A DNA stretch of 64,000 nucleotides, from positions 1,364,001 through 1,428,000 of the forward strand of contig JBNJNM010000006.1 in the NCBI GenBank assembly GCA_052426225.1, read 5' to 3'. Shown here piece by piece: positions 7,386 to 50,184 of the stretch (positions are counted from its first letter, which is position 1; each line of letters starts with the position of its first letter). This DNA is from Zancudomyces culisetae HAW-14-8. Lineage: Eukaryota; Fungi; Kickxellomycota. The notes under the pieces were generated by a model. It worked only from the letters and a program-made list of their open reading frames with translations. It ran no database searches and was not told the DNA's origin. Made by a program: the position numbers and the translations under genes.

Positions 7386-7797
7386 ACTGTGTCGCATTAT
7401 TAACAATTTGTACAATAGCACGTGGATGTGCCTGAAAATGGTACACTCAGTGCGAAAATGCAAATTCATTTTTGTTTACTTTTTTTAAATAAAATAATTT
7501 TGAGCTCAGTATGCAATCAATTTTTCATACTGAGCTAGTTCAATAATGATGAATGTAAAATGTAAAATGATCCCATGCATTTTACATTTATCATTAATAA
7601 CAAGCAAATTAGTAATAATATTATAACAATAGTCATATTTTAGTATTTAGTTTTTATATAGTGGTTTAACATTCGAATAGTATATTTAAGGAGACGTATG
7701 GATGACATATGAAAACATCATCCATGTCTCGATACGGAATACTATAATAAAATAATTAAATAAAATCAAATATAAACCAAAAGATAAATTAGCAATA

Positions 7798-10278: not shown

Positions 10279-10697
10279 AAGGGGAGGAATGTCGCATTAT
10301 TAACAATTTGTACAATAGCACGTGGATGTGCCTGAAAATGGTACACTCAGTGCGAAAATGCAAATTCATTTTTGTTTACTTTTTTTAAATAAAATAATTT
10401 TGAGCTCAGTATGCAATCAATTTTTCATACTGAGCTAGTTCAATAATGATGAATGTAAAATGTAAAATGATCCCATGCATTTTACATTTATCATTAATAA
10501 CAAGCAAATTAGTAATAATATTATAACAATAGTCATATTTTAGTATTTAGTTTTTATATAGTGGTTTAACATTCGAATAGTATATTTAAGGAGACGTATG
10601 GATGACATATGAAAACATCATCCATGTCTCGATACGGAATACTATAATAAAATAATTAAATAAAATCAAATATAAACCAAAAGATAAATTAGCAATA

Positions 10698-13178
10698 ATG
10701 TTTTTAAACAGTTGGATTGGAACCGAATGTGACTCCAGGAGGGAGTCACACACTTCTACCAGCATGAGCAGGGGCAGCAGCATGGATCAGGATGCAGGGG
10801 TATTAAGTCCCCGCACCCTTGGTGAGTTGACAGAAAGTGTCCGTCAACTCCAGATCCGTAGGAGCCCGGAAGAAATGTCGGTGAGTACAATTTCACCGAC
10901 ACTGTACAGGGGTATTAGCTCACCCGAGCACCCCTCGATGCACATTGCATTACGCAATAGAAGTGCATCAACCATCAGTGATCGTACCAGAACCGGTATA
11001 ACACGTGATGGTAGCGCTAATGGAAGTAGTGATACTTCACATTATGCGACATGGCGTCAGCGACAGGATCATCATTCTACTGATGATCACATGGATAGAA
11101 GACCGATGAGTGCAAGCCCGGAATTGTATGAATCACCAGCACTGTACTTCTCACCTAGAAGTTCTGATAGTGCGAGAACACCGTCACCACCTAGTCCCAC
11201 GACGGCACAAGTTGCGAAAAGATTGTTTGTAAGCGGGGTTAATAAAATAAAGGAGTACGCACCGAAAACCATTGAAATTTTTAATTTTGATACTGCACCA
11301 GGAAAACAAAAAGAAAATACTAAAACAGAAGCGAGTACCAGCAAAATAAGACAACAAGTAATAGGGAGTAAATCAGCTAAAGAAGTGTTGGAATCAAACG
11401 TGAAGGCTACTCAGGAGCGAATGAGGAAAGGTCAAGATAACAATGCACCAGGTTGGTTACCAGTACCACCGGCACCGTTTAGCAATTCATGGGATCAAGA
11501 TCCCGAGGAGTTTTTGAATAAGTTTTGCAAACATGTGAACTCATTGGAGCAGATTTTAACATTAGAGGAAACTTACCAGTACTTGGAAACTTTGTTGGAA
11601 GGCTCGATAAAGAAAACTTTAATGGATCTTATGGTTATAGAAGACAACTGGGAAGATTATTGCAAAATGTTTATAAACACTTGCAATAAATACAGGGATA
11701 CTTCGGAGGCACGGAAACAGTTTGAAAAGTACAATTTATATATTAATAACCCAATAACAACTTTTGCAGATTTAAAGAGATTATTTAAAAATATGAAAGT
11801 TGATGACGAAACTAAAATGACAGAAGAAGTTTTTAAAAAACTAAACCCGTCGGATAAACAGCATTTAAGGAATAATAAGGAAAGTATTACCATGAAGTCA
11901 ATGTTAAAATATATGTTACAACGTGAGGAAGATATATTGGAATCGAAAAAGGCTCAGGGAAAAATAAATACAAAATCAGATAATAACAAAAATACTAAAA
12001 TTACAAATACATATAAAAAACATTTTGAGAATAACACTATTCAGAATGGTAACAAAAGTGATTATTATAACAGTGAAGAGCAGGATAATAACCAGTTTAA
12101 AATTAGAGGGTTAACAAGGAAAATATCGGAAGATAAATACGAAACTCCAACCAAAGCAGGGAAACAGCAGCGGTCAGACATTAGTAAGGTAAAGTGCTAT
12201 AAGTGTCAACAATACGGACATTATGCTAATAACTGTTCGACAGAGCTGGAAGACATAGAGATGAGAACAGCAACACCAATAAAGAGAATTGAGGATAACC
12301 CGAAGGAAATAAATTGGGTCGAAGTACAAGAAGGAACCAATGAACATCCCATATACACCCAGGACGAATTAAGCACCAAGATAAATGCTATCATAGGCAA
12401 AGTAAAAATTAACGGCAATGAAACCAGTTTTCAATACGACAGCGGAGCTGCCACAAACTTGATGAGTCACACCATGGCAGAAACTCTTGGATTAGGGATA
12501 GGAGAAGAAACAGATACTACTTTAGTAGGAATAGGAGGACACCAGTCTAAGCCAAAGTATTACCCATCAGTGAAGTTAAATTTTGATACGTTTACACTAA
12601 ATGCACCTATATATTCTATAGAAAATGGAAAACCAAACTTACTGTTGTTAGGAGTTGACTTAATTGCAAGCTTGAAAGCTAACATAAATTTGAAAGACAA
12701 CCTGATAACCTGCACAATAAAAGGGATAAATCATAAAATACCGATAGCTTTAAGAAAGGAGGATTCGAGCGTAATCAAGGAAAACAAAAAAATTTGTAAC
12801 ACTGTTGAAGTTTTGGCCAAAACGAACCCAAAGTCTAGTAAGAAAAAGATTGGGAAAACTACAAAACATAACTATTACAATAATGAAATGGAACTTACCG
12901 ACTGGAAAAATTCAGGAGAGAAAACCATGATTCAGGACCATAATTGTAAAAATTCGAAATCTAACAAAGTTACAAAGGTCAAATGTGAAAACAGTATACT
13001 GGAAAATTTTAAAATTAAGGACCTACAATTAAAATCTAAAAATATAAATGAAAACGAAAATGAAAATTGGAAATTTGAACATGATACAAAAGACAAATGC
13101 ATATCAAGAGACCTAACCGAAAACAAAAAAATAAAACAACCAACGACAGTTCCAATGATCGAGGACGATCAGACTTAA
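10698..13178 (+). CDS. Gag-aspartic protease polyprotein, copy 2
   Basis: Translation identical to 7798..10278. Confidence 0.88.
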   Translation: MFLNSWIGTECDSRRESHTSTSMSRGSSMDQDAGVLSPRTLGELTESVRQLQIRRSPEEMSVSTISPTLYRGISSPEHPSMHIALRNRSASTISDRTRTGITRDGSANGSSDTSHYATWRQRQDHHSTDDHMDRRPMSASPELYESPALYFSPRSSDSARTPSPPSPTTAQVAKRLFVSGVNKIKEYAPKTIEIFNFDTAPGKQKENTKTEASTSKIRQQVIGSKSAKEVLESNVKATQERMRKGQDNNAPGWLPVPPAPFSNSWDQDPEEFLNKFCKHVNSLEQILTLEETYQYLETLLEGSIKKTLMDLMVIEDNWEDYCKMFINTCNKYRDTSEARKQFEKYNLYINNPITTFADLKRLFKNMKVDDETKMTEEVFKKLNPSDKQHLRNNKESITMKSMLKYMLQREEDILESKKAQGKINTKSDNNKNTKITNTYKKHFENNTIQNGNKSDYYNSEEQDNNQFKIRGLTRKISEDKYETPTKAGKQQRSDISKVKCYKCQQYGHYANNCSTELEDIEMRTATPIKRIEDNPKEINWVEVQEGTNEHPIYTQDELSTKINAIIGKVKINGNETSFQYDSGAATNLMSHTMAETLGLGIGEETDTTLVGIGGHQSKPKYYPSVKLNFDTFTLNAPIYSIENGKPNLLLLGVDLIASLKANINLKDNLITCTIKGINHKIPIALRKEDSSVIKENKKICNTVEVLAKTNPKSSKKKIGKTTKHNYYNNEMELTDWKNSGEKTMIQDHNCKNSKSNKVTKVKCENSILENFKIKDLQLKSKNINENENENWKFEHDTKDKCISRDLTENKKIKQPTTVPMIEDDQT

Positions 13179-13954
13179 AAGGGGAGGAATGTCGCATTAT
13201 TAACAATTTGTACAATAGCACGTGGATGTGCCTGAAAATGGTACACTCAGTGCGAAAATGCAAATTCATTTTTGTTTACTTTTTTTAAATAAAATAATTT
13301 TGAGCTCAGTATGCAATCAATTTTTCATACTGAGCTAGTTCAATAATGATGAATGTAAAATGTAAAATGATCCCATGCATTTTACATTTATCATTAATAA
13401 CAAGCAAATTAGTAATAATATTATAACAATAGTCATATTTTAGTATTTAGTTTTTATATAGTGGTTTAACATTCGAATAGTATATTTAAGGAGACGTATG
13501 GATGACATATGAAAACATCATCCATGTCTCGATACGGAATACTATAATAAAATAATTAAATAAAATCAAATATAAACCAAAAGATAAATTAGCAATAATG
13601 TTTTTAAACAGTTGGATTGGAACCGAATGTGACTCCAGGAGGGAGTCACACACTTCTACCAGCATGAGCAGGGGCAGCAGCATGGATCAGGATGCAGGGG
13701 TATTAAGTCCCCGCACCCTTGGTGAGTTGACAGAAAGTGTCCGTCAACTCCAGATCCGTAGGAGCCCGGAAGAAATGTCGGTGAGTACAATTTCACCGAC
13801 ACTGTACAGGGGTATTAGCTCACCCGAGCACCCCTCGATGCACATTGCATTACGCAATAGAAGTGCATCAACCATCAGTGATCGTACCAGAACCGGTATA
13901 ACACGTGATGGTAGCGCTAATGGAAGTAGTGATACTTCACATTATGCGACAACT

Positions 13955-14027
13955 GCCTTCTTGGCTCAGTTGGCAGAGCGTCTGCCTAGTAAGCAGAAGG
14001 TCGCCGGTTCGATTCCGGCAGAAGGCA
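13955..14027 (+). tRNA. tRNA-Thr(AGT)
   Basis: Full cloverleaf: acceptor GCCTTCT/AGAAGGC, anticodon arm TCTGC-CTAGTAA-GCAGA, T-loop TTCGATT, followed by TTTT. Confidence 0.95.
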
Positions 14028-18938: not shown

Positions 18939-21900
18939 TGTCATATAGCAAATTGACAATTGATTCGTAACTGGTTACGAATCCGAAATGCATTAGTTTT
19001 TTTTATCCTAGTGATTTTTCTAATAACATTTCGTTTTTAATTATGATTTTTTAGTAGTATCTTATATAAGAGTTTTTTAGTTAGTTTTTTTTTATAAAGG
19101 TTACACAATAAATAGTTAATTTAGGAATAAAAAGATATACAACTTAGGTCTGAAATAGAACATAGTATTATTTAAAAATAGAATAACATAGTTTTATATT
19201 TAGCATAGTAGTATTAAATATAAGAGATACTAGCATAAAAACGTTAGTATCTGACAGTGGCGATCACGGTGGGACCTATACGTCCTTCAGATTATTTTCA
19301 TTTAAGGATTCGACTAGGAAATAATAATTCTATTATAGAGAGATAAAGAAAATGGTTATAACATCACCAAAGCAATTTGAATCTGGAAAAGGGATAGATC
19401 CAGCAGAGTGGATTGAGGACTTCAAACTGGTCGCAAAGTTGAATAGTTGGCCGGAAGATGACCTTATTGACCTTGTGAAGTTATTTTTAGGGAACAAGGA
19501 AAAGATATGGTTCAAGAAGAACAAAGTAAAATTTACCAGCTGGGAGGAATTAAGCAAAAGATTCAAAGAAAAATATGGTACTACAGATTCAAAGGAGAAA
19601 ATTTGGAATCGGTTGCGATCGATTAAACAGTCTGAATTTGATAGTATAGAAGAACTTGAAGTGGAGTTGAATCATTTACTAAATAAAGCTAACATCAAAG
19701 ATATTGGGAACAGATTCGATTTTTTAGTTAGTACACTTAGAGTAGAATTTAAAGAGAAAGTTGAAGAAAACAGCATAACTGAGTGGGATAAGGTAATTGA
19801 ATTAATCACAAAGGTTGAGGAAGGTTCAGTGGTAAGCCCAAAGAAAGGGGATCACAAGGATTCTAAAGTTCAAGCGAAGGATTATACCACGAACGCTGCA
19901 TCAAAAGGGAAAAGTGTTAAGGAAATTGCAAAAAACTCAGTAGCGTACAGTGACATGATGAAAAGATTCGAGGAAATGAGTGTGAGCCTGATCACAAAAG
20001 TAGAGCAAGTAGTTGATCAAAAACTTAAGGAAGCGTCTACAAGTAATAGAAGAGTACAGCCCTTTGTGGTAAAATGTTATTCGTGTAATGAAATAGGCCA
20101 TCGTAAGTATGAGTGTCCGAAGATAAAAGAAAGCGGTTCAAGCGATGGTAGCAAGGTAGACATTCAAAAGAACATAAATTATATTGAGGTAATTGAGAAT
20201 CATAGTGCAGTGGAAGACGATGCACAGGTGTATGCAATTGATAAAAGAAAGCACAGTGACATAGCCAGTGGAGCAACAGAACAACGCCCTACTAAGTACA
20301 GGACCGCACGCACTAGGGGAGTCCACTCTACACCGGAAGAGACCAGTGGTGTGGCCCATCCGACAGCGGAAGTTGGGGATGAATCGCTGGGAGATGAGAA
20401 TAGGCTAGAATCAAACATTTCAAGAGGTAAAAACTACCAGCTGTTGAAAGGCACCAACAAGACCTTCTCCATTATCGAAGAGTTGCGCAAGGTCTACCCA
20501 AAAATTGATGCTTTACAGTTAATTGAGAATGCCCCAATATACTCAGAAGAGTTGAAGAGCTTCCTCAAAAAGGACAAGGTTATGGAACTAAACGAAATAC
20601 AAGTTCAAGAAAGAAAAACATCTAATTGCAGAATAATGGTGCAAGTATTCGGACAAAAATTGTGGGCAGTGGTGGATACAGGGGCGGCTTGCTCCGTTGT
20701 TACTTACAACCTAATGGAGGGTTGGGGATTGGACATGGATAGTAAAAGTGGGCTAACATTAGTGACGGCGGATGGGAAGAGGCATAACACCCTAGGAAGG
20801 TTGTCGCAGGTGCCGTTAATGATTGCAAGCTTCATATTACCAGTAAATCTGATCGTTATGTCCAGAAATGACGATACTCTTATCCTAGGAACCGATTGGT
20901 TACTACAACATAAGGCTTCGTTGAATCTTAAAGTACCTGAACTAAGGATACCAATCGAAAACGTGGAAGTAGTTACAAGGCTAGAAACATCCGCAGATTT
21001 GAACATGGAAGATGAAAAAGCTGAACTGTACGCTATCTTAAAGCAAGGACCAGTAGGAAGAGGATCGTGCCTGGAGGTGGAGCTTGAAAGTGTAATCCAT
21101 AAGTATAACAACATCTTTGTTAGCGACCTTTCCGAGCTCACTCAAACTAGCGTGATAGAACATCGTATCCAGGTAAAAGATGAGACACCTATCAAGCTCA
21201 GGCCTTACCGGATACCGCATAGGCAGCAAGAGCAGGTATTGCATGAATTAAAGGAAATGGAAAAACAGGGAATTATTTCACCGACAACTTCTGAATGGTG
21301 CGCTCCAGTGGTGATAGTCCATAAGAAAAACGGAAAGATACGCGTCTGCGCCGACTACCGGAGGCTCAATGAGGTGACAAGAAAGGATAGTTATCCGCTC
21401 CCTGTTATCGCAGATCTGTTCATGGCTTTGTCTGGCGCGGTTGTGTTTAGCTGCCTTGACGCCATGAGCGGATTTTGGCAGATCCGTATGCATAGCGCCG
21501 ACAAAGCAAAAACAGCCTTTGCCATCCCAGGGAGTGGCGCTTTTGAATATAACGTCATGCCGTTTGGACTAACGAATAGTCCGGCGACGTTCCAACGCGC
21601 AATGGAAAAAGTACTACAACCTCTGTTATGGAAGTGTGCCGTAGTTTTTGTGGACGATATTATCGTCTTCTCGAAAGAAATCAATAAGCATGCGGAAGAT
21701 TTGGATAAGGTTTTAGCATTATTAGAAAAGAATCAAATACAGCTCCACCGGGATAAATGCGTTATAGGATTTACAGAACTCGAATATCTAGGGCACACAA
21801 TATCCGCCAAGGGGATAGGAACCAGCCCAAAGAAAGTGGAAGCTATAAACAATATAAAGGCTCCGACGTGCGTTAAGGAATTGCAATCGGCATTAGGGAT

Positions 21901-24117
21901 GACTGGATATTACAGGAAATATATTCCTAACTATTCTCGGGTCACCAGTCCCTTAACGCAACTACTGAAGAAGTCTGTAAAATGGGACTGGGGTGACGAG
22001 CAGGAAGAGGCGCTCAGACAATTGAAGGTATTGATGTCTTCTGCACCGGTATTAGGTCATCCAGACTGGACCGTCGAGTTTGTGATCACCACGGACGCAT
22101 CAGCAATAGGAATAGGAGGTGTGTTATCTCAGATTACCAGCGAAGGTGAGAAAATAATAGAGTATGCAAGCCGAACCACCACTCCAGCAGAAAAAAACTA
22201 CTCCATAAGCCATTTGGAAGGCTTGGCCGTGGTTTGGTCAGTTAAAAAGTTCAAATTCTACGTATGGGGTAGAAAGTTCAGAATCAGAACCGACCACAAG
22301 TCGTTAATCCAATTGTTCAATAGCCCAGATATAACAGGTCGTGTTGCACGCTGGGCTATGGTCCTACGTAGTTTTGATTATACCATAGAGCATTTACCCG
22401 GAATTATCAACCCAGCCGATGCTCTGTCTCGACTAGTTACTGAGAATGAGAATGAACAGGATGATGTAGAGCTCGACGTGTTTGCCATGGAAATTTTAGA
22501 ATACGAAGATATAAAACAGTACCTTACGGAAAAGAAGTTACCAGACAATATAGATGTGGAGTACAAAGAAAGGCTAAAGAGAAGATCTAAACTATATAAA
22601 ATCGATAAGGGTAAACTAATGAAAGAAGTAAAAGGATGTTTGAAAGAGGTTTTGCATCGAGGAAATATCCGCCAAGTAGTTGAGTCAATACACAACGAAG
22701 GGCACGAAGGCATAGAAAACACCTGGTTGCGTGTATCACAGAGGTATACCAGTAGGAATATATATAGAGAGGTCAAGGAAATCGTAAAGTGTTGCCCGGT
22801 ATGCCAATTATACAAGGGTAGTAAAAGTAAAAGGCATCCACTGGTTCCAATAGTTACAACGAAACCTTTCCAGATAGTCGGAATTGACGCAATCGGGCCA
22901 ATAGCACCGATTTCCGCTAGTGGAAACAGGTTCATCTTGACGGCTATAGACCTGTTCACGAAATGGCCTATTGCATTAGCTGTACCCAATATACAAAGTA
23001 ACACCGTAATAAATTTCCTTATAAATGAGGTCATAGCACCATTTGGAGTACCTCAACAACTGATTAGTGACCGTGGGTCCAGCTTCCTATCTGAATGTGC
23101 GACTCAAGTGTACGAGTGGTTGGGTATACACCACACTCCCACGACCTCGTACAGGCCTCAGAGTAATGGTCAGACGGAACGACTGAACCAAACTCTCATG
23201 AATGTATTGATTAAGCAATGTCGGAATGATAAACAGAAGTGGGATGCCTACCTATGGAAAACTCTACTGGTAATACGAACTTTGAGAAATAAATCGATTG
23301 GATACAGTCCGGCGGAGATGCTGTATGGCGTTGAGCTTTCACTACCCACTACATGGAAGTACAATGGAGAAATTGAAAACGTAGAGGAATTGATTTTAAG
23401 CAGGGTGAAACAGATAAATGACGACTTACCTGTGTTGAGAAATCTGGCTCATAAGAGTTCTATCGAAGCCAAAAGTTCACAGGCAACAAGGTATAACAAG
23501 GGTGTCACGTACCATAGGTTTGAGGTAGGTGAGAAGGTTCTTAAGTTGGTAGACATGGAGAGGTCAAAACTCGAACATTATTGGGAAGGCCCCTACACGG
23601 TTGAAAGAGCTTTAAGCAAGGGTGCGTATGTTATAAGTGATCAAGAAGGTAACAGAGAATTAGCTCATGGAGATATGCTTAAGAAATACCACACCAGCAA
23701 CTATATGATTCCGGATGTAACAACGACACTGAAGACTAAGTTGAAGCGATTTAAGCAGTCCCGGCGGAATGAGGGCATCCGCGCTTAAAAGGGGGGAGCT
23801 GTCATATAGCAAATTGACAATTGATTCGTAACTGGTTACGAATCCGAAATGCATTAGTTTTTTTTATCCTAGTGATTTTTCTAATAACATTTCGTTTTTA
23901 ATTATGATTTTTTAGTAGTATCTTATATAAGAGTTTTTTAGTTAGTTTTTTTTTATAAAGGTTACACAATAAATAGTTAATTTAGGAATAAAAAGATATA
24001 CAACTTAGGTCTGAAATAGAACATAGTATTATTTAAAAATAGAATAACATAGTTTTATATTTAGCATAGTAGTATTAAATATAAGAGATACTAGCATAAA
24101 AACGTTAGTATCTGACA
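18939..24117 (+). mobile_element. Intact Ty3/gypsy LTR retrotransposon
   Basis: 318-bp LTRs 18939-19256 and 23800-24117, CATA TSD, PBS TGGCGATCACGGTGGGAC (tRNA-Arg-like), PPT AAAAGGGGGGAG. Ends 7 nt upstream of tRNA-Gly. Confidence 0.96.
19352..23788 (+). CDS. Gag-Pol polyprotein (CCHC, PR, RT, RNase H, IN), single ORF
   Basis: CYSCNEIGHRKYEC; VDTGA; MPFGLTNSPATFQ, FVDD; TDAS; HHCC/DDE integrase; WEGPY. Confidence 0.95.
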   Translation: MVITSPKQFESGKGIDPAEWIEDFKLVAKLNSWPEDDLIDLVKLFLGNKEKIWFKKNKVKFTSWEELSKRFKEKYGTTDSKEKIWNRLRSIKQSEFDSIEELEVELNHLLNKANIKDIGNRFDFLVSTLRVEFKEKVEENSITEWDKVIELITKVEEGSVVSPKKGDHKDSKVQAKDYTTNAASKGKSVKEIAKNSVAYSDMMKRFEEMSVSLITKVEQVVDQKLKEASTSNRRVQPFVVKCYSCNEIGHRKYECPKIKESGSSDGSKVDIQKNINYIEVIENHSAVEDDAQVYAIDKRKHSDIASGATEQRPTKYRTARTRGVHSTPEETSGVAHPTAEVGDESLGDENRLESNISRGKNYQLLKGTNKTFSIIEELRKVYPKIDALQLIENAPIYSEELKSFLKKDKVMELNEIQVQERKTSNCRIMVQVFGQKLWAVVDTGAACSVVTYNLMEGWGLDMDSKSGLTLVTADGKRHNTLGRLSQVPLMIASFILPVNLIVMSRNDDTLILGTDWLLQHKASLNLKVPELRIPIENVEVVTRLETSADLNMEDEKAELYAILKQGPVGRGSCLEVELESVIHKYNNIFVSDLSELTQTSVIEHRIQVKDETPIKLRPYRIPHRQQEQVLHELKEMEKQGIISPTTSEWCAPVVIVHKKNGKIRVCADYRRLNEVTRKDSYPLPVIADLFMALSGAVVFSCLDAMSGFWQIRMHSADKAKTAFAIPGSGAFEYNVMPFGLTNSPATFQRAMEKVLQPLLWKCAVVFVDDIIVFSKEINKHAEDLDKVLALLEKNQIQLHRDKCVIGFTELEYLGHTISAKGIGTSPKKVEAINNIKAPTCVKELQSALGMTGYYRKYIPNYSRVTSPLTQLLKKSVKWDWGDEQEEALRQLKVLMSSAPVLGHPDWTVEFVITTDASAIGIGGVLSQITSEGEKIIEYASRTTTPAEKNYSISHLEGLAVVWSVKKFKFYVWGRKFRIRTDHKSLIQLFNSPDITGRVARWAMVLRSFDYTIEHLPGIINPADALSRLVTENENEQDDVELDVFAMEILEYEDIKQYLTEKKLPDNIDVEYKERLKRRSKLYKIDKGKLMKEVKGCLKEVLHRGNIRQVVESIHNEGHEGIENTWLRVSQRYTSRNIYREVKEIVKCCPVCQLYKGSKSKRHPLVPIVTTKPFQIVGIDAIGPIAPISASGNRFILTAIDLFTKWPIALAVPNIQSNTVINFLINEVIAPFGVPQQLISDRGSSFLSECATQVYEWLGIHHTPTTSYRPQSNGQTERLNQTLMNVLIKQCRNDKQKWDAYLWKTLLVIRTLRNKSIGYSPAEMLYGVELSLPTTWKYNGEIENVEELILSRVKQINDDLPVLRNLAHKSSIEAKSSQATRYNKGVTYHRFEVGEKVLKLVDMERSKLEHYWEGPYTVERALSKGAYVISDQEGNRELAHGDMLKKYHTSNYMIPDVTTTLKTKLKRFKQSRRNEGIRA

Positions 24118-24124
24118 CATACAA

Positions 24125-24195
24125 GCGTTAGTAGTATAGCGGTAGAATAGATGCTTCCCAAGCATTTGGCCCGGGTTCGACTCCCGGCTGACGCA
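24125..24195 (+). tRNA. tRNA-Gly(CCC)
   Basis: GCGTTAG/CTGACGC acceptor, GATGC-TTCCCAA-GCATT, CCGGG-TTCGACT-CCCGG, poly-T terminator. Confidence 0.93.
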
Positions 24196-33771: not shown

Positions 33772-33843
33772 AGGTCCTACCGAGAGTCGAACTCGGGCTA
33801 CTGGATTCAAAGTCCAATGTCATGACCGTTAGACCATAGGACC
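33772..33843 (-). tRNA. tRNA-Gln(TTG)
   Basis: Minus strand: GGTCCTA/TAGGACC, TTGGA-CTTTGAA-TCCAG, CCGAG-TTCGACT-CTCGG, T-run terminator. Confidence 0.94.
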
Positions 33844-33851
33844 ATATATTG

Positions 33852-34272
33852 TGTTAACTTTCGACCCTTTTCTGCTAGTAGTCGTAGTTATTCGTATTTA
33901 GTTGGTTTAAAATTTAATAGAAAAGTTAATTATCTACTTGTTTTGTTCGAAACTCTAACTAACTATTAAGACTTGTTTATTATTTTGGTTATTATTCTTT
34001 TATTTTTTATTGCTAAAAAGTTGTTATTCCTAAAAGTTATTCTTCCAAACTATAAATAAAATTTATATATAAACTATTTTTTTTCCATCTATTTTGTTAT
34101 CTCAATTTTTTTGTGTTATCAATTTTTGTTTTGTAATTTCTTGGCTCATTAAAAAAACCCAAATTGTTAGGGAAAAAAGAGTCCAATTTTTCCACTAATT
34201 TTAATATAGTAATTTATCAGAATTGACTTTGTCAATTCGTATTTTTTATAATATATAATTAATTATGCAACA
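33852..34272 (-). repeat. Solo LTR, tRNA-proximal unit of array 3
   Basis: TGTTAAC...ATGCAACA, 8 nt from the tRNA-Gln 5' end; second copy at 45762-46181. Confidence 0.85.
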
Positions 34273-34274
34273 AT

Positions 34275-35262
34275 TGTTGTGTGTTGCCATGTTTAACGTC
34301 CCATTTAGTGTTTTTTACACCAAATAACACACGGGACGGGTCATTTTACTTACCTTTTACTATATGCTGCGAATTATTATACAGTACTTTGGATTTTGCA
34401 AAAGAGGACATTTATTTAGTTAAACAAAAATTTCAATTTTATACAATAAAATCTACAAAAAATCTAACTAAAAATTACAAAACACAATTAACCAATGGAA
34501 ATGTTTCGCCTATTGTAGGCATACAACACCTCCCCCCCTCAGCTTAAGTACAGGATTCCACCCGCTTTAAGCTTTACAATGTCTACGGACTAACAGTATC
34601 AGAGTTATATGTCCGATTTATGACTACAATGCAGATTCAACTTAGTTGAAACTCTGCCAAAAAATATTGAACATTTGGTTCAATTCCAACAAGGACCGAA
34701 AATTTCTGATTCGAATCCTTAATATATGCAAAAAAAATCATTAGTTTTTTCTTCGAAAAACTGCATATACCTACCGATTATCTTGGTTCAAATTCGTTTC
34801 TGGAGTCGTATATGGTATTACCGATGCTGTAAACTGCTTCACGCTAGGCTCTCTGTCCATTGTGGCGTCCTTCGCTCCCGTTTATCTTGTCGAACCTGTG
34901 AATCCTACGAATTATTTTTTGAATCCAAAAAATAATCTTCTACAAAACGAGCTCCTAGCTCGGTCAAAGGACCCTTCTCAACGGAGTGGGTCCTGGCTGG
35001 ATCACCACTGTTGTGTGTTGCCAAGTTTAACGTCCCATTTAGTGTTTTTTACACCAAATAACACACGGGACGGGTCATTTTACTTACCTTTTACTATATG
35101 CTGCGAATTATTATACAGTACTTTGGATTTTGCAAAAGAGGACATTTATTTAGTTAAACAAAAATTTCAATTTTATACAATAAAATCTACAAAAAATCTA
35201 ACTAAAAATTACAAAACACAATTAACCAATGGAAATGTTTCGCCTATTGTAGGCATACAACA
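34275..35262 (-). mobile_element. TRIM (miniature non-coding LTR element), copy 1
   Basis: 254-bp LTRs 34275-34528 and 35009-35262. Minus-strand PBS TGGTGATCCAGCCAGGAC (tRNA-Val-like) and PPT GAGGGGGGGAGG; 480-bp internal region. Confidence 0.9.
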
Positions 35263-35268
35263 ATATTG

Positions 35269-38200
35269 TGTCGTATAATAAAAAAATTTTATTTATACCT
35301 AATGTAAAAACAATATAATTTGTAACTCTAAGTAAGTATTATCCTTGATAACTAATACCACTTAAAGATTAACTTGTACTGATATATTGAGTGATTAGAA
35401 TCTAATATTTATTAATGTGAACCACAAAATCTGATAGATAAAACTCTCACAAAAACTCTACCAAACCTTAAATAAAAACTAATTACGATTAAAGGGATTC
35501 AATTTTCATTGTTTTTCCTTTACGTAATTTTAGCCAATAAAACCTATCTAAAATAACTTTATAAAATTGAACTAAAAAATATACTAAAATAAACAAAACT
35601 AAACTAAAACATAGTACTATTGTACTATACGACAGCACTCCCCCTTTAGGCGATAATGCCCTCATTATTTTGAGCCTGTTTAAAGGTAAGTAACTTAGGT
35701 CGAAGTCGATTTGAAATTTCGGGAATCATAAATTTAGATTCATGGTACTTCTTTAGCAAGTCTCCGTTGACTAAATCTCTATTTCCGAACTGATCTGAGA
35801 TTAAGTAAGCCCCCTTAGTAAACCTTTTCATAACTGTATATGGGCCTTCCCATAAACTTTCAAGCTTTCCTCTTTCATACTCTACTAACTTTAACACTTT
35901 TTCTCCAACTTGAAATTTTGTAAATTTAACGGTTTTATTATATCTTACTTTTTCAGATTCTTTTGCTGCTACAGCTTTGCGAACCCCGATTTTTCTTATT
36001 TGCGGTAAGTTACTCTTCATTAGCTCCAATCTACTTTTAACTTGTTCAACTTCATCTTCAATTACACCATTAGATTTCCAAGTCGAGGGAATGCACATTT
36101 CGGTTCCGTACATCATCTCGGCGGGTGTATAACCAGTACTCTTGCTCTCCATAGTTCTCATGATGAGTAACACCTTCCACAGGTAACGATCCCAATTATT
36201 TTTGTCTTTCCTACATATCTTCTGTAACAAATTTACTAACGTCTTGTTCAATCTTTCACACTGTCCGTTGCTCTGCGGACGGTATGAAGTGGTAGGACTG
36301 TGGTCCAGCTGTAACCAGTTGAATACCTCGGTAGTAACGTTGCTGACAAAGCTCGAACCCCTATCTGTTATTATCTTCTGTGGTACACCGTAGTAAGTAA
36401 CGATATTGTTTATTATAAAGTCTACTATAGTTTCACTTAACAAGTTGTCTACGGGAATGGCTATCGGCCATTTCGTGCAATAATCTATAGCTGTTAGAAT
36501 ATAACGATTTCCTGACTCTGAAATAGGATTGATAGGACCGATAGCGTCCATACCGAATATTTCGAACGGCTTGACTGCATGCACTGGTACCAACGGGTGT
36601 TTACGACTTCTTCCATCCTTGAAAACTTGACAAACATGACACCGCTTAACATAGTCCACTACCTGCTTGTACAATCCTTTAGCATAATGATTTCTGCTTA
36701 CTCTTACCCAAGTGTTTTCGATACCCTCGTGTGTATCGTCGTGAACCTTCTTGATCATATCTATACTCTCTTCAGCCGTCAAAACTTCTTTTAATTGTCC
36801 CTTAACCCACCTGTATATTTTGCCATCCACCTGCTTGTATGACTTAGATTTTTTCTTTATTTTTTCAGCTAACTCTTCTGAAACGTCTTGTGGCAGTGTT
36901 CCATCTAATAAAAATTGCCTAACTAAATTTTCTTCGTTTACCCAAATGTTGTAGACTTCAATTGATTCTTCCTCAGTTGTTTCTATCAGACTACTTCGAG
37001 ATAAATGGTCAGCAGGATTGACCTTCCCTGGTATATGCTCTATATCGAATTCGTAACTTCTAAGAAACATAGCCCATCTAGCTAGCCTTCCACTTAATTC
37101 TTCGCCGTTAAACATATTTAATAATGCTTTATGATCGGTTTTTATTACAAACTTCCTACCATATAAATAAAACTTAAACTTTTTAACGGCCCAGACAACC
37201 GCCAACCCCTCCAAGTGACTGATCGAATAATTTTTCTCTGCATTACTGGTTGTTCTACTTGCATACTCCACTGGTCTTTCTTTTCCTTCAATAACTTGTG
37301 ATAGTATTGCTCCAACTCCACTAACTGCAGCGTCCGTCGTAACCACAAAAGAATAATCCCAATTTGGGTGCGCAAGCACTGGGGCTTCCGTCATCGCTTT
37401 TTTCAACTCTAAAAATGCTTCTTCTTGAGATTTTCCCCAGTTCCACTTTATTCCTTTCTTTAATAACGCAGTTGGTGGGTTAGCTATTATAGCATATTTT
37501 TCAATAAACTTACGATAATAACCTGTCATCCCCAAAAATGACTGAACTTCTTTTATGCATGTCGGTGACTTTAACTTTGAAATGGCTTCAATTTTTGTTG
37601 AACTAGTTGCAATACCTTCACCCGAAATAACATGACCCAAATAATCAATTTCTGTTAACCCTATATTGCATTTATCTTTATGCAACTGTATCTGGCCTTG
37701 TTTTAATAATTCTAAAACTTCCTTAAGATCTTCTACATGACTGCTTGCACTTTTTGAAAAGACGATTATGTCGTCAACAAAAACAACTGCCTTCTTCCAT
37801 AGAACTTTTTTCAACACAGTTTCCATTGTTCTTTGGAAAGTGGAAGGGCTATTTGTCAAACCGAAAGGCATGACGTTATAGTGGTAACTCCCCCCTCCCG
37901 GCAACGCGAATGACGTCTTTTCTCGGTCTTCTTCTGACATTTTTATTTGCCAAAAGCCGCTGAGTGCATCTAAAGTAGTAAAGATGCACGCACCAGCCAA
38001 GGCCATAAACAAATCCTGAATAATCGGTAGTGGGTATGAATCTTTGACTGTAACTGCGTTTAACTTCCTATAATCTGCGCAGATGCGCAGTTTACCGTTT
38101 TTCTTCTGGACAACCACCACCGGCGAGCACCACTCGGAGTTACTAGGTGCAATTACATTTTGCTCTAACATCCTATCTATTTCTTTTCCTACTTCTTCTT

Positions 38201-40349
38201 GTAGACGAAACGGTATCCTGTACGGTCTTTGCTTAATTGGCCTGTTATCCGTGAGTACTATCCTGTGCTCGGCTACATTTGTTTGCTTTAACTTGTCGAT
38301 ATCATCTACAAATAATTCGTTATAGTCCTGGATCAAGGCCTCTAAACCTGCTACACCATCACCTTGGATTCCTGTTGGTGATTCCGTGAAAAAATATAAA
38401 TCCCAGGTTTCCTCTACAGTATGTGCTTCTTTGGTAGTAACTAGTGGTGTTACCACTTCTGCTCTATCCACAGGTAATCTTAGTTCTGGCACTGCTAGAT
38501 TTAGACTGGCTTTATGTTTTAAAAGCCAATCCATACCTAATATTATTGTTGGTGACATATTTCCCAACACCACCAATGATGCTACGAACTCAATTTTACT
38601 AATCATAATTGGTACACCTGACACCACACCTAGAGTTTCATGACGTTTCCCGTCCGCTGTTATAATAACGTGCGAACTCTTCATGTTAGGCTCCAAACCA
38701 ATCTTGTTCAAAGCACCTGTAGTAATCACAGAGCATGCCGCCCCTGTGTCTACCACCGCTTTCCACTGTAACTGGTAAATCTCAACCGTCATACTACAGT
38801 TTGTAGTAGCTTTTTCCTGGATTCTTATCTCGTTTAGGGCGGTCTGCGGTGAAACTTCAACTATGTTTTTCCAATCCTGTGCAATTTTTTCCGAATTTTG
38901 AAGTAATTGAATCATGCTAATTTTTGGATAGACTTTCTCCAACTCTTCCCTCAAATTGAACTTTTTCACTCTATCAATCGTTCCTGACTCCGGTTGGGTG
39001 ACTCTCTCCGCCCGAAGCTCCTGTGCGTCCATGTCTCCCGTATTTCTAATCTTAGCTGGTCTTCCAACTCGACCAGCCGCATCCGTTGCTTTTCTTTTTT
39101 CTACCATAAGTACTTCGTCTACTTCAGTAGGTTCAGTACCTATGGATAAAAAATTGACTTTCTTTTCCTCGTGCTCCTTTTGAAACCGTGGACATTCAAA
39201 CTTCCGGTGACCTTTCTCATGACAATAATAACACTCCCATGTGCTTGCACGTTCCACCTTTGCTTGACTTCCCCACTTTTTAGTTGAAGCAACCGTTTGA
39301 TCTAACTTTTCCAAGAGGCTGACACTAAGCTCTTGAAAGGTTTTGAGAAACTCTCCAAACTGCCCAGCTTCCGTAGTCAATTCTTTTACCGACTTGCCTG
39401 ACCGGGTAGCAGCGTTCTTAGTAGTTGGCTTACTACTCTTAATTGCTGCCTGTATATCCCTCCTACAATTTGTACTTTGTTCCAACTTAGCCACTAACTT
39501 AAGTACCGCTTCTCTATCTAAACCTTCCTTATCTGAAAGTCTTTCCCTAATATCATCTGAGAACGTACTAACCAGTGAACCAAGTTTAGTCACCTCTTCC
39601 TTGATTCCTACTTGTTTCCATAACTTTTCCAATTCCATTTCTAGCTCCTCCAGACTTTCAAACTCTGCTCGTTTGATTGTTCCAAGTCTGGTCCATGCTC
39701 CACTAGTAGAAAACACTGTACTATATTTCTTTTTGAACTCCTTAGTATATATTTCCCACGACGTGAAACTATTCTTGTTCCTCTTATACCAGATTGTTTC
39801 AGACTTGCCTAGCCACAACTTAACTAACCCGACCCAATCCTCAGGGTCCCACTTGTTAATCTTCGCAATTAGTTGAAAGTCCTCAAGCCAGTCCTCGGCG
39901 TTTATTCCTTTCCCACTTTCGAATATAGTGACTTTGTCCATGATTCAATTAGTATCGATGTAGATTCCGACAGAAGGCACCACTGTCGTATAATAAAGAA
40001 ATTTTATTTATACCTAATGTAAAAACAATATAATTTGTAACTCTAAGTAAGTATTATCCTTGATAACTAATACCACTTAAAGATTAACTTGTACTGATAT
40101 ATTGAGTGATTAGAATCTAATATTTATTAATGTGAACCACAAAATCTGATAGATAAAACTCTCACAAAAACTCTACCAAACCTTAAATAAAAACTAATTA
40201 CGATTAAAGGGATTCAATTTTCATTGTTTTTCCTTTACGTAATTTTAGCCAATAAAACCTATCTAAAATAACTTTATAAAATTGAACTAAAAAATATACT
40301 AAAATAAACAAAACTAAACTAAAACATAGTACTATTGTACTATACGACA
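35269..40349 (-). mobile_element. Intact Ty3/gypsy LTR retrotransposon (second family)
   Basis: 366-bp LTRs 35269-35634 and 39984-40349, ATTG TSD, PBS TGGTGCCTTCTGTCGGAATC (tRNA-Thr), PPT next to 35634. Confidence 0.96.
35646..39941 (-). CDS. Gag-Pol polyprotein (CCHC, PR, RT, RNase H, IN), single ORF
   Basis: CYYCHEKGHRKFEC, VDTGA, FVDD, TDAA, integrase core, WEGPY. Confidence 0.95.
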   Translation of the reverse strand: MDKVTIFESGKGINAEDWLEDFQLIAKINKWDPEDWVGLVKLWLGKSETIWYKRNKNSFTSWEIYTKEFKKKYSTVFSTSGAWTRLGTIKRAEFESLEELEMELEKLWKQVGIKEEVTKLGSLVSTFSDDIRERLSDKEGLDREAVLKLVAKLEQSTNCRRDIQAAIKSSKPTTKNAATRSGKSVKELTTEAGQFGEFLKTFQELSVSLLEKLDQTVASTKKWGSQAKVERASTWECYYCHEKGHRKFECPRFQKEHEEKKVNFLSIGTEPTEVDEVLMVEKRKATDAAGRVGRPAKIRNTGDMDAQELRAERVTQPESGTIDRVKKFNLREELEKVYPKISMIQLLQNSEKIAQDWKNIVEVSPQTALNEIRIQEKATTNCSMTVEIYQLQWKAVVDTGAACSVITTGALNKIGLEPNMKSSHVIITADGKRHETLGVVSGVPIMISKIEFVASLVVLGNMSPTIILGMDWLLKHKASLNLAVPELRLPVDRAEVVTPLVTTKEAHTVEETWDLYFFTESPTGIQGDGVAGLEALIQDYNELFVDDIDKLKQTNVAEHRIVLTDNRPIKQRPYRIPFRLQEEVGKEIDRMLEQNVIAPSNSEWCSPVVVVQKKNGKLRICADYRKLNAVTVKDSYPLPIIQDLFMALAGACIFTTLDALSGFWQIKMSEEDREKTSFALPGGGSYHYNVMPFGLTNSPSTFQRTMETVLKKVLWKKAVVFVDDIIVFSKSASSHVEDLKEVLELLKQGQIQLHKDKCNIGLTEIDYLGHVISGEGIATSSTKIEAISKLKSPTCIKEVQSFLGMTGYYRKFIEKYAIIANPPTALLKKGIKWNWGKSQEEAFLELKKAMTEAPVLAHPNWDYSFVVTTDAAVSGVGAILSQVIEGKERPVEYASRTTSNAEKNYSISHLEGLAVVWAVKKFKFYLYGRKFVIKTDHKALLNMFNGEELSGRLARWAMFLRSYEFDIEHIPGKVNPADHLSRSSLIETTEEESIEVYNIWVNEENLVRQFLLDGTLPQDVSEELAEKIKKKSKSYKQVDGKIYRWVKGQLKEVLTAEESIDMIKKVHDDTHEGIENTWVRVSRNHYAKGLYKQVVDYVKRCHVCQVFKDGRSRKHPLVPVHAVKPFEIFGMDAIGPINPISESGNRYILTAIDYCTKWPIAIPVDNLLSETIVDFIINNIVTYYGVPQKIITDRGSSFVSNVTTEVFNWLQLDHSPTTSYRPQSNGQCERLNKTLVNLLQKICRKDKNNWDRYLWKVLLIMRTMESKSTGYTPAEMMYGTEMCIPSTWKSNGVIEDEVEQVKSRLELMKSNLPQIRKIGVRKAVAAKESEKVRYNKTVKFTKFQVGEKVLKLVEYERGKLESLWEGPYTVMKRFTKGAYLISDQFGNRDLVNGDLLKKYHESKFMIPEISNRLRPKLLTFKQAQNNEGIIA

Positions 40350-40351
40350 AT

Positions 40352-41339
40352 TGTTGTGTGTTGCCATGTTTAAGCTCCCATTTAGTGTTTTTTACACCAA
40401 ATAACACACGGGACGGGTCATTTTACTTACCTTTTACTATATGCTGCGAATTATTATACAGTACTTTGGATTTTGCAAAAGAGGACATTTATTTAGTTAA
40501 ACAAAAATTTCAATTTTATACAATAAAATCTACAAAAAATCTAACTAAAAATTACAAAACACAATTAACCAATGGAAATGTTTCACCTATTGTAGGCATA
40601 CAACACCTCCCCCCCTCAGCTTAAGTACAGGATTCCACCCGCTTTAAGCTTTACAATGTCTACGGACTAACAGTATCAGAGTTATATGTCCGATTTATGA
40701 CTACAATGCAGATTCAACTTAGTTGAAACACTGCCAAAAAATATTGAACATTTGGTTCAATTCTAACAAGGACCGAAAATTTCTGATTCGAATCCTTAAT
40801 ATATGCAAAAAAAATCATTAGTTTTTTCTTCGAAAAACTGCATATACCTACCGATTATCTTGGTTCAAATTCGTTTCTGGAGTCGTATGTGGCATTACCG
40901 ATGCTCTAAACTGCTTCACGCTAGGATCTCTGTCCATTGTGGCGTTCTTCGCTCCCGTTTATATTGTCGAACCTGTGAATCCTACGAATTATTTTTTGAA
41001 TCCAAAAAATAATCTTCTAAAAATCGAGCTCCTAGCTCGGTCAAAGGACCCTTCTCAACGGAGTGGGTCCTGGCTGGATCACCACTGTTGTGTGTTGCCA
41101 TGTTTAACGTCCCATTTAGTGTTTTTTACACCAAATAACACACGGGACGGGTCATTTTACTTACCTTTTACTATATGCTGCGAATTATTATACAGTACTT
41201 TGGATTTTGCAAAAGAGGACATTTATTTAGTTAAACAAAAGTTTCAATTTTATACAATAAAATCTACAAAAAATCTAACTAAAAATTACAAAACACAATT
41301 AACCAATGGAAATGTTTCACCTATTGTAGGCATACAACA
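40352..41339 (-). mobile_element. TRIM, copy 2
   Basis: LTRs 40352-40605 and 41086-41339; slightly diverged from copy 1. Confidence 0.9.
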
Positions 41340-48350: not shown

Positions 48351-50025
48351 CCCGTCTCTGTAGTGCTTGGAATCCAATAGCTTTATAGTAGGACATAAAT
48401 CATATCTACTACAGTCAGCCTGTTATATGTTGAATTATGTAACTGTGTTTCCTTTTATTATATTGGATAATTTAAATAGTATTATACTATGCCATAAATA
48501 ATAGTTTTGAATAAATTAATAAATTGTCTTTATTCTCATAATATTTCTAAATCTAAAATATAATTTTAAAAGTCCCGTCCCGTTTAATACTGGGTAATTA
48601 TATTACTTTTTAGGAGATAAATATGTAGTTTTACAACAAGCCATGTCGTATAGTAATACGATTAGAACTCTTAATGCATTGAGATTTCAAATCTCAATAT
48701 TTCATAGTAGTTAAATTATAGTATAGTTAACTTTATTTTTTGATTGGACTTTTATCACCCCGTGGTTTTGACCAGCGATTTATTTTAGTATAATAGTTTA
48801 TTTAGATATTTATTAACTAATTATTTCGGCGTTTAAGATAACGCCCACAGAATAGAATTAAAGTAACTCTTAACAATCAAATTAAAAGTCTAAGTTTTAA
48901 CATTGTATATGTAAATAATCAAAATATGTCGTTAGTTATATAGAAATACCTAGAAAGTATTAAATAAAATATATTCCTCTCCGGCCATGTCGTATAAAAT
49001 ATTATACGTTATTGTTTTCTCATCTATTGTAATTAATAGTGTTATTTTATTGGTTATTTATTTAATAGTTCTTGTTGATTTTGTAGTATTTATTTAATGA
49101 AATTTTTAGTTTAATAAATTTGTCTCTTTTGAATAAAATTCTAGTACATATAAATATTTATAAATAGTAAATATTAGCGGCCCGTCTCATGTAGTGCTTG
49201 GAAGCCAATAGCATTCAAGTAGGACGTAAAACATTTCTACTACATGACAGCCTGTCGCAAGAATGCTTCCAATGTTAATTCTTACGCATTAATACGAGTG
49301 TATTATTTAATTATAGCTAGTCTACTAAAAGTATATTTAAACTATTATCTTTAAACTTAGATGTTGTTATATCTTATCTATATTGATATATATTTATTCT
49401 AATAAAGTCTAACCTTAATCCTAAAACTGTAAAGTTTTATATTTATACCTAGATAAAATGTTTAAGCTTTAAACCTGTCCAATAACGTATAAAAACCACT
49501 AAGGAGTAAAAACTACTATTATTGTACATAATTCATAAGATATGTTGTCTCGCACGACAAGCCTGTTATATAGTGGCTAGTACTACATCTAGACGCTATA
49601 TAATATCATCTCACCAATAACTAATTCATTTTTATATTAATATTTAGGTTTATCAATTAATTTATATTTTAATTATTATAGGATATTTAGTATATTATGT
49701 GTTGCCTAGTTTTTTTTATCCTTCTGGATTTTTTCTACAGCAACATTCTGGTTTATTATTAATATTTAGTTATGTTTTAAGTTTAAGTATATATTTAGTT
49801 TTCAAGTATATAATAGTCATTTAATTATAAGTATAAATAGGGCTAGGAAACTAACTATGAAAACATCATCAAATAAAAATATAAAAAAAGGTTTGGACTA
49901 TATTCAATAAGTGTATAACTTTTATTTTGAAAACTACAAAGAATAGTAATTATGATAGTTAGTTATAATTAAAATATATTTACAAAAGCAATACAAAAAT
50001 ATTCAATCTGTATTTTTGTCAACTG
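48351..50025 (+). repeat. Solo-LTR stack (array 4) upstream of tRNA-Thr 50032
   Basis: Units 48351-48417 (truncated), 48421-48638, 48644-~48980, 48988-49249, 49253-49559, 49564-~50021. Spacers GCC/AGCCA/GCCA/GCC/AGCC. Confidence 0.82.
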
Positions 50026-50031
50026 CCAATT

Positions 50032-50104
50032 GCCTTCTTGGCTCAGTTGGCAGAGCGTCTGCCTAGTAAGCAGAAAGTCGTCGGTTCGATTCCGACAGAA
50101 GGCA
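50032..50104 (+). tRNA. tRNA-Thr(AGT)
   Basis: Cloverleaf as at 13955, with a compensatory T-stem GTCGG/CCGAC. Confidence 0.95.
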
Positions 50105-50112
50105 CACAACTT

Positions 50113-50184
50113 GCCTGATTAGCTCAGTGGTAGAGCGTTGGTCTTGTAAACCAAAGGTCGGGTGTTCAATCCACCCATTAGGCA
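50113..50184 (+). tRNA. tRNA-Thr(TGT)
   Basis: GCCTGAT/ATTAGGC, TTGGT-CTTGTAA-ACCAA, GGGTG-TTCAATC-CACCC, TTCTTTTT terminator. Confidence 0.93.

Follow-up and report, generated by a model that had tools for sequence, protein, structure and literature searches.

The arrays of long terminal repeats (LTRs) that lie upstream of tRNA genes in Zancudomyces culisetae are, very probably, chronological stacks that grew by serial integration with a 4-bp stagger, that carry spacers derived from the tRNA flank and that were built in two registers. We studied them in a stretch of 64,000 nucleotides (G000:C6:1364001-1428000; hereafter the window) and in sampled DNA of about 250 kb that covers 20 tRNA loci and 12 small ones of the 55 tRNA loci of the host, a eukaryote with an AT-rich genome of 27 Mb. 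The positions, the duplications, the orientation of the elements and the chaining of the duplications are read directly from the DNA. Every independent tRNA start in the window has an LTR end (...ACA) 3-8 bp upstream. The 31 tRNA-adjacent junctions that we scored lie 3-12 bp from the first base of the mature tRNA (+1), beside genes for tRNA-Thr, Gly, Gln, Lys, Arg and at least seven more types. The target-site duplication measured 4 bp in all 42 clean cases and was perfect in 42/50 LTR units or elements with homology-defined ends; a perfect 4-bp match is estimated to arise by chance in about 1% of pairs at the local base composition.

Array 4 and the origin of its spacers

Array 4 precedes the first gene of a tRNA-Thr(AGT)-Thr(TGT) pair and consists of LTR units U1 to U6 (Table 1). 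Its spacers are GCC, AGCCA, GCCA, GCC and AGCC, exactly as the original prediction had listed them (48418-49563). GCC occurs in 5/5 of these spacers in DNA with a local G+C content of about 23%, a pattern that is locus-specific and far beyond chance. The original prediction had taken this GCC for the first bases of the mature tRNA. We found that it derives instead from the upstream flank AGCCAATT (-8..-1) and not from tRNA +1..+3. The targets in the flank are AGCC at -8..-5 or GCCA at -7..-4, and AGCCA corresponds to -8..-4. When the units were excised singly from the tRNA outward, each with its right-hand 4 bp, the chain read AGCC (U5), GCCA (U4), GCCA (U3) and AGCC (U2), all perfect 4-bp duplications, and every array-4 insertion fell at 7 or 8 bp from +1, the modal distances of the larger of the two insertion classes described below (class II). 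AATT intervenes between the final GCC and tRNA +1, and in two of the spacers GCC is followed by A, as in the flank, where the tRNA has T.

The same LTR families have different spacers at other loci. U5- and U6-family LTRs also adjoin one another in a tRNA-Lys array (L002), separated by AAAACA in place of the AGCC of the window, and the U5 family there has the duplication AAAA; the end of a U1/U4-family LTR at locus L015 is followed by ATC where the window has GCC. The spacers are therefore a property of the site and not of the elements. Together with the perfect excision chains, this upholds the proposal that the spacers are copies of the target site beside the anchoring tRNA. Further homologs of U2 are found at 18013-18263 and 41666-41888 of the window and in L014, and part of U3 (48647-48784) is 92% identical to 47000-47137 in reverse orientation.

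Paralogous tRNA-Thr(AGT) loci have related flanks. L015 reads ...ACGACA, GCCAATT, GCC, that is, an LTR end and then GCCAATT before the tRNA; in L029 ...CAACA is followed by GCACAATT and GCC; in L014 the pre-insertion site is ...AAGCCAAAT followed by GCC (flank GCCAAAT), with the duplication CCAA. The extra ACTGCC to which the original prediction drew attention is indeed present just before the array-4 tRNA, at 50022-50027. Homologous U6-family LTRs in L002 and L015 end in ...GTCAACA (CGTCAACA), and the homology of U6 runs through ...GTCAAC, so the AC of ACTGCC is LTR sequence. We rejected a reading of ACTGCC AATT GCC as TGCC-AAT-TGCC, left behind by an element since lost whose duplication covered +1..+3: LTR homology covers the AC, and the flanks of L015, L014 and L029, which are of the GCC(A)AWT type, contain no ACT. 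For annotation, GCC-type spacers are not to be taken for tRNA fragments.

At G000:C23:334340-334374 a family B solo LTR follows ...ACAAGCCA with an AGCCA-type spacer, in an array whose anchor is not tRNA-Thr(AGT); GCCA-type targets are thus not unique to array 4.

Two registers of insertion

The sampled autonomous gypsy families and terminal-repeat retrotransposons in miniature (TRIMs), which we call class II, have their 3' LTR end 6-9 bp before +1 (once 12; median 7.5; n=20, made up of the two surveyed autonomous families, other autonomous copies and two TRIMs), and their orientation is that of the tRNA in 20/20. In the family with 419-bp LTRs, 14/17 paired copies have a perfect 4-bp duplication, and the 13 copies that abut a tRNA lie at 6, 7, 7, 7, 7, 8, 8, 8, 8, 8, 8, 9 and 12 bp, all (13/13) oriented as the tRNA. 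Family B has perfect duplications in 7/10 paired copies and distances of 6, 7 and 8 bp. The elements of L001, L007, L014, L015 and L020 occupy the same range, as do element C of the window and the TRIMs.

Family A (class I) behaves differently. Its ten tRNA-adjacent copies lie at 3, 3, 3, 3, 3, 3, 4, 6, 6 and 10 bp, six with the tRNA and four opposite, and its paired copies have perfect duplications in 8/8 cases. Distance separates the two classes (Mann-Whitney p = 5e-4), and so does orientation (Fisher p = 0.008). The original prediction noted that the ACTG at 13952-13955 includes G+1 of tRNA-Thr; this holds, and it extends to the family, in which four verified duplications include tRNA +1 (ACTG, TATC and, twice, ACAG, of which one belongs to a reversed copy and is given as on the tRNA strand). 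A family A duplication spans -3..+1, so that one strand transfer falls between tRNA +1 and +2. Duplications that include +1 occur in family A and in none of the insertions in array 4, array 3 or any class II element; the closest of the 31 scored junctions lies at 3 bp, and no duplication reaches +2. Integration at or inside the tRNA 5' end, which had been proposed, is not the general rule; the other families (20 copies) insert 6-9 bp upstream, once 12. On balance we favour the view that -3..+1 is a second, distinct register, used in either orientation by the non-autonomous family A and probably by a related family too.

Array 3, other stacks and the order of insertion

Array 3 is anchored by tRNA-Gln(TTG) on the - strand. 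The original prediction had read its spacers correctly for the + strand; taken along the strand of tRNA-Gln, the series is AT, CAATAT, AT and AAATAT, beside the flank CAATATAT. Its excision chain is perfect throughout, with distances to +1 at insertion of 8, 6, 8 and 6 bp, and the CA of its CAAT duplications is the terminal dinucleotide of the older LTR. The array in L002 likewise resolves by successive excision into ACAA, AACA and AAAA, all perfect. At C9:563430-571838 two elements of the 419-bp family lie in succession, and the inner duplication, AATT, is seen only in the reconstructed GAAT site of the outer one (GAATTCAA). These perfect chains mean that each unit adjoined the tRNA when it was inserted and that the newest unit is innermost.

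Solo LTRs of the U5 family and then the U6 family stand in the same order at 49253-50024 of the window and at 1857-2632 of L002. The two arrays are unrelated (tRNA-Thr and tRNA-Lys) and their spacers differ; the shared order suggests successive genome-wide bursts that could be dated across arrays.

In L015 a U6-family LTR directly adjoins the end of a family A-related LTR (...ATTGCGACA) and is followed by GACA, so its duplication is the last four bases of the older LTR, as expected of an insertion at 7 bp beside an older LTR that lay 3 bp from +1. The spacers between the units of this tRNA-Thr array are accordingly of the GACA/AGAC type, whereas its present flank is GCCAATT (L015 1813-2913 and 7994-8000). 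Its full-length element has no matching duplication and LTRs that are 98.6% identical, and is probably recombinant. These features suggest recombination or gene conversion with the tRNA-Thr locus of the window, 105 kb away.

Some other insertions and flanks deserve mention. A full-length element with 419-bp LTRs, 100% identical to each other, has inserted between the two genes of a Thr(AGT)-Thr(TGT) pair, within their 6-bp spacer (L007 2601-8073; G000:C6:847881-853353). Its duplication, CACT, takes in C72-A73 of the upstream tRNA, and it now holds 5.3 kb apart two tRNA genes that are normally adjacent and possibly co-transcribed. The tRNA genes of L003, L004, L007 (2601), L011, L012, L013 and L017 had no repeat match in the upstream 400 bp within the 250 kb sampled and may be unoccupied. 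They have in common an A-rich flank with CA, for example ACAAAAAAAGTT before GCC, which may mark the native start region for RNA polymerase III (Pol III). On contig C21 two family B elements 22 kb apart (G000:C21:1465446-1470649 and 1487375-1492578) have identical 5' and 3' junctions, which indicates a recent segmental duplication that included the retrotransposon.

Structure and classification of the elements

Element B has its 3' end 7 bp before tRNA-Gly(CCC) at 24125. Pfam domains appear in the order protease, reverse transcriptase (RT), RNase H and integrase (IN) at 19352-23788 and 35646-39941(-) of the window, at L007 3165-7580 and at L018 1987-6567(-); the order gag-protease-RT-RNase H-integrase places these elements in Ty3/gypsy (Metaviridae). 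The integrases have a conserved GPY/F module and the proteins end about 70 aa past it; a Pfam search of the integrase C-terminus detected no chromodomain. All the LTRs have the form TGT...ACA, a TGG resembling a primer-binding site (PBS) follows the 5' LTR directly or one base on, and polypurine tracts (PPTs) of the AAAAGGGGGGAG type stand just ahead of the 3' LTR. By eye, the PBS of element C, TGGTGCCTTCTGTC (window 39970-39983, - strand), is the exact complement of the 3' end of tRNA-Thr(AGT) with its CCA, and this tRNA is one of the elements' target species.

The open reading frame (ORF) of element A encodes 826 aa with a zinc knuckle and an aspartyl protease, without RT or IN, in an internal region of 2138 bp; the element is therefore non-autonomous. 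Because the gag ORF starts within the LTR, each LTR of element A carries its first 118 codons. The element is a perfect tandem in which 3662 bp are repeated at 100% identity. The LTRs of family A have the termini TGTCGC...GCGACA. With LTRs, PBS, PPT and a gag(-protease) ORF and no RT or IN, family A resembles the TR-GAG type. The TRIMs of array 3 are 988 bp long and have no ORF. We take family A and these TRIMs to belong to the TR-GAG/TRIM-type class of non-autonomous LTR elements.

Sampling and scoring

Within the window ARAGORN and Rfam/Infernal agreed on the first bases of five tRNA genes, with +1 concordant at 50032, 13955, 24125 and 33843; outside it +1 was set by the register of the invariant U8/G10/A14, with 18-20 visible bases. 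The limits of the LTR units rest on pairwise homology and TG...CA ends, counts of boundaries of high-scoring segment pairs being too sparse in the 250-kb sample. Genome-wide junctions were collected with patterns 35 places long, set on LTR termini and returned with the flanking bases, for two autonomous families (the 419-bp LTR family and family B) and for family A. Locus L019 (G000:C18:1-8081) was left out of every count. It lies on a 61-kb contig with 16 densely packed tRNA genes in about 2.3 kb (5597-7906), which is probably the mitochondrial genome. Low-coverage contigs of DNA sequencing runs yielded no empty-site allele and no joint, and nothing relevant on transposable elements in Harpellales or Zancudomyces emerged from a search of the literature.

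The features of the window are collected in Table 1. In an Rfam/Infernal search of the whole window, in which 5S rRNA and U6 would represent other Pol III genes, tRNAs were the sole matches. The window also contains, amid the LTR arrays, an ORF of 296 aa for a Tc1/mariner-like DDE_3 transposase (16565-17455, +), and a long ORF (28419-32381, +) with a nucleoside-diphosphate-kinase domain and many YTV-type repeats; imperfect tandem repeats with about 80-88% identity form a long array at 29587-31066.

Table 1. LTR units, spacers, elements and tRNA genes in the window (positions are those of the window).
Feature	Position	Strand	Remarks
Element A, left duplication ACTG	7386..7389	+	
Element A	7390..13951	+	tandem LTR-internal-LTR-internal-LTR; 762-bp LTRs 100% identical
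Element A, right duplication ACTG	13952..13955	+	-3..+1 of tRNA-Thr(AGT); G13955 is tRNA +1
tRNA-Thr(AGT)	13955..14027	+	ARAGORN, Rfam/Infernal; acceptor stem GCCTTCT/AGAAGGC
Element B, autonomous Ty3/gypsy (gag-PR-RT-RH-IN; PR, protease; RH, RNase H)	18939..24117	+	318-bp LTRs 100% identical; duplication CATA
tRNA-Gly(CCC)	+1 at 24125	+	ARAGORN, Rfam/Infernal
tRNA-Gln(TTG), array 3 anchor	33772..33843	-	ARAGORN, Rfam/Infernal; upstream flank CAATATAT at 33844-33851
Array 3, tRNA-proximal part	33852..41339	-	chained duplications CAAT, ATAT, CAAT, ATAT at distances 8, 6, 8, 6
Solo LTR, 419-bp family, array 3	33852-34272	-	
TRIM1, array 3	34275-35262	-	
Element C, autonomous, array 3	35269-40349	-	
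TRIM2, array 3	40352-41339	-	
U1, truncated 3' fragment of solo LTR, end ...CTACAGTCA	48351..48417	+	same family end as U4; 86.7% identity to 49181-49255
Spacer GCC	48418..48420	+	with terminal A of U1, left AGCC duplication of U2
U2 solo LTR, TGTTATAT...TTACAACA	48421..48638	+	AGCC/AGCC, perfect once younger units are excised
Spacer AGCCA	48639..48643	+	right AGCC of U2 overlaps left GCCA of U3
U3 LTR-derived unit, TGTCGTAT..., atypical 3' end ...CCTCTCCG	48644..48983	+	duplication GCCA/GCCA
Spacer GCCA	48984..48987	+	shared by U3 (right copy) and U4 (left copy)
U4 solo LTR, TGTCGTAT...ACATGACA	48988..49249	+	GCCA/GCCA; 86% identity to L015 9348-9613
Spacer GCC	49250..49252	+	with terminal A of U4, left AGCC copy of U5
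U5 solo LTR, TGTCGCAA...GCACGACA	49253..49559	+	AGCC/AGCC; about 91-93% identity to L002
Spacer AGCC	49560..49563	+	right copy of U5, left flank of U6
U6 solo LTR, TGTTATAT...TGTCAAC+T	49564..50024	+	95% identity to L015 1813-2272, 93% to L002
tRNA-proximal flank GCCAATT (-7..-1)	50025..50031	+	together with base -8 gave rise to all array-4 spacers
tRNA-Thr(AGT), array 4 anchor, gene 1 of Thr(AGT)-Thr(TGT) pair	50032..50104	+	ARAGORN, Rfam/Infernal; starts GCC
tRNA-Thr(TGT), gene 2 of pair	50113..50184	+	ARAGORN, Rfam/Infernal

Proposed mechanism and alternatives

In our reading, each new LTR element integrates within a narrow zone immediately ahead of the mature tRNA 5' end, its intasome presumably tethered to the Pol III initiation complex, as in the elements Ty3 and Tj1. 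From the Ty3 mechanism and the parallel with Tj1 we infer that the tether may be TFIIIB or Pol III itself. Integration yields a 4-bp target-site duplication and displaces the older elements outward, many of which collapse into solo LTRs. Each insertion adds one copy of its 4 bp, which makes the spacers a set of overlapping copies of the tRNA-proximal flank; at times they include the terminal A or CA of the preceding LTR. In array 4, reuse of an AGCC or GCCA target would generate the series GCC, AGCCA, GCCA, GCC, AGCC. Short pre-tRNA leaders, if present in this host, would put the class II sites at the start site of transcription. Family A would cut about 4-5 bp further in than class II, and gap repair with duplication would leave the gene intact. 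Its register and orientation are unlike those of every autonomous family sampled, which is unexpected if it merely borrows the integrase of one of them. The implication is either a helper integrase outside the sample that has another geometry on the Pol III complex or a shift in cis, in which the LTR ends or the element's own Gag might alter the register of a shared integrase.

Several observations weigh against this interpretation. U6 has the sole irregular junction of array 4: its left AGCC faces T+GCCA on the right, homology with other copies ends at C50023, and T50024 stands in place of the homologs' terminal A. This irregularity is a one- or two-nucleotide difference in an old unit. Perfect duplications are lacking in 8/50 units, among them the full-length L015 element, and no close autonomous relative or partner of family A was found in the approximately 250 kb sampled. 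Since the integrases lack a chromodomain, a TFIIIB contact identical to that of Ty3 is not to be assumed. Most genome-wide +1 positions were placed by the U8/G10/A14 register, including that of a C-starting tRNA (CCGAGAATAGCTCAG). Finally, positions are seen after selection, and deeper insertions into tRNA genes would have been lost.

Segmental duplication, unequal crossing-over or gene conversion among the tRNA loci might instead have enlarged the arrays, with the spacers inherited. Some features point that way: U6-family LTRs and the GCCAATT flank are common to L015 and the locus in the window, which lie on a single contig at a distance of 105 kb, the L015 element combines LTRs of merely 98.6% identity with the absence of a matching duplication, element A is a tandem LTR-int-LTR-int-LTR, and C21 carries a 22-kb duplicate with identical junctions. 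As the origin of the arrays these processes are nevertheless very improbable, given that adjoining units belong to different LTR families, that every unit carries an exact 4-bp duplication of its own, each nested in the following one, and that young elements with LTRs 99.7-100% identical occupy the same positions at many tRNA species. We give hardly any weight to the suggestion that new elements target the termini of resident LTRs, the tRNA having merely seeded the first insertion. Young full-length elements do stand at LTR-LTR junctions far from a tRNA (element C at 1.4 kb, the L006 element at 474 bp upstream), and duplications often take in the CA of the older LTR, but once the younger inner units are excised such elements sat 6-8 bp from +1 at insertion. 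Insertions are also found at tRNAs without a resident LTR, in the 6-bp Thr-Thr spacer of L007 and in L014, where the target is unique DNA. About nine sampled tRNA genes have no upstream repeat match within the approximately 250 kb, and occupancy therefore looks incomplete.

The model of the original prediction, in which integration takes place at or inside the mature 5' end and the GCC of array 4 is a copy of tRNA +1..+3, is very improbable and, for array 4, contradicted, although some observations favour it: the tRNA starts GCC, every array-4 spacer contains GCC, the ACTGCC at 50022-50027 is identical to positions -3..+3 of the paralog (13952-13957), and family A does duplicate -3..+1. The AATT before +1, the GCCA of the spacers set against GCCT in the tRNA and the LTR origin of the AC in ACTGCC all contradict it, and the spacers of array 3 never contain the tRNA-Gln start, GGT. 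With 0/31 scored junctions closer than 3 bp, no duplication seen covers +2 or +3; copying of +1..+3 needs distances that were never observed, whereas derivation from the flank gives four perfect duplications at the usual class II distances.

Relation to known systems and significance

Tj1, a Ty3/gypsy element of Schizosaccharomyces japonicus, inserts 5-11 bp before the mature tRNA end in a fixed orientation (Guo, Singh & Levin 2015; PMC4600332). Tj1 and class II are alike in always being oriented with the tRNA and in forming LTR clusters at tRNA genes (PMC4600332). Tj1 makes a 5-bp duplication and class II a 4-bp one; Tj1 has gag and pol in two ORFs split by a stop, where the elements described here have a single gag-pol ORF; the present host, unlike that of Tj1, is a non-Dikarya fungus. 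The Tj1 sites come from de novo assays whereas ours are deduced from resident copies. For Tj1 no insertion nearer than 5 bp or in the opposite orientation has been reported, and family A has both.

In Saccharomyces cerevisiae TFIIIB positions the IN of Ty3, and the strand transfers occur at -6 and -2 with respect to the start of transcription (PMC8632968), some 15 bp ahead of the mature tRNA end (PMC5911963). The expectation that integration here is closer than that of Ty3 was borne out, the sites being much nearer the mature 5' end, with Tj1 at 5-11 bp as a published precedent (PMC4600332). The present elements resemble Ty3 in belonging to Ty3/gypsy, in their exact positioning at Pol III genes and in leaving the internal promoter intact, and Ty3 uses both orientations, as does family A. 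Ty3 differs in its 5-bp duplication and in an IN that binds TFIIIB by way of its C-terminal domain and a chromodomain; here the duplication is 4 bp and no chromodomain was detected. Tca8 inserts at 6-30 bp, and the elements of Yarrowia lie about 5 bp upstream of the start site (PMC5911963). The Dictyostelium LTR element DGLT-A, found 13-33 bp upstream (PMC5006619), resembles ours in its single ORF, its lack of a chromodomain and its location upstream of tRNA genes, but is more distant. The non-LTR element NLTR-A of D. purpureum, 2-6 bp before the mature coding sequence (PMC5006619), has the sole published register that we found to be as close as that of family A; it uses target-primed reverse transcription and not an integrase with a fixed 4-bp stagger.

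In the published literature we found no LTR element with a modal distance of 3 bp and a duplication that reaches +1. The -3..+1 register is what is new, and class II is Tj1-like with a 4-bp duplication. If this register is genuine, family A would have the closest targeting of an LTR retrotransposon to a Pol III gene among the published cases found; Ty3, Tj1, DGLT-A, Tca8 and the Yarrowia elements come no nearer to the mature end than 5 bp. In the present non-Dikarya fungus an entire community of gypsy families occupies the tRNA-flank niche, and the 5' leader and upstream promoter-proximal DNA of many tRNA genes come from LTR ends. Because the 4-bp duplications are chained, the order of insertion is directly readable, and with it the relative ages of families across loci. 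The presence of two registers at the same genes, one at 6-9 bp in a single orientation and one at 3 bp in both, amounts to a natural experiment on the placement of the intasome relative to the TFIIIB/TFIIIC/Pol III complex.

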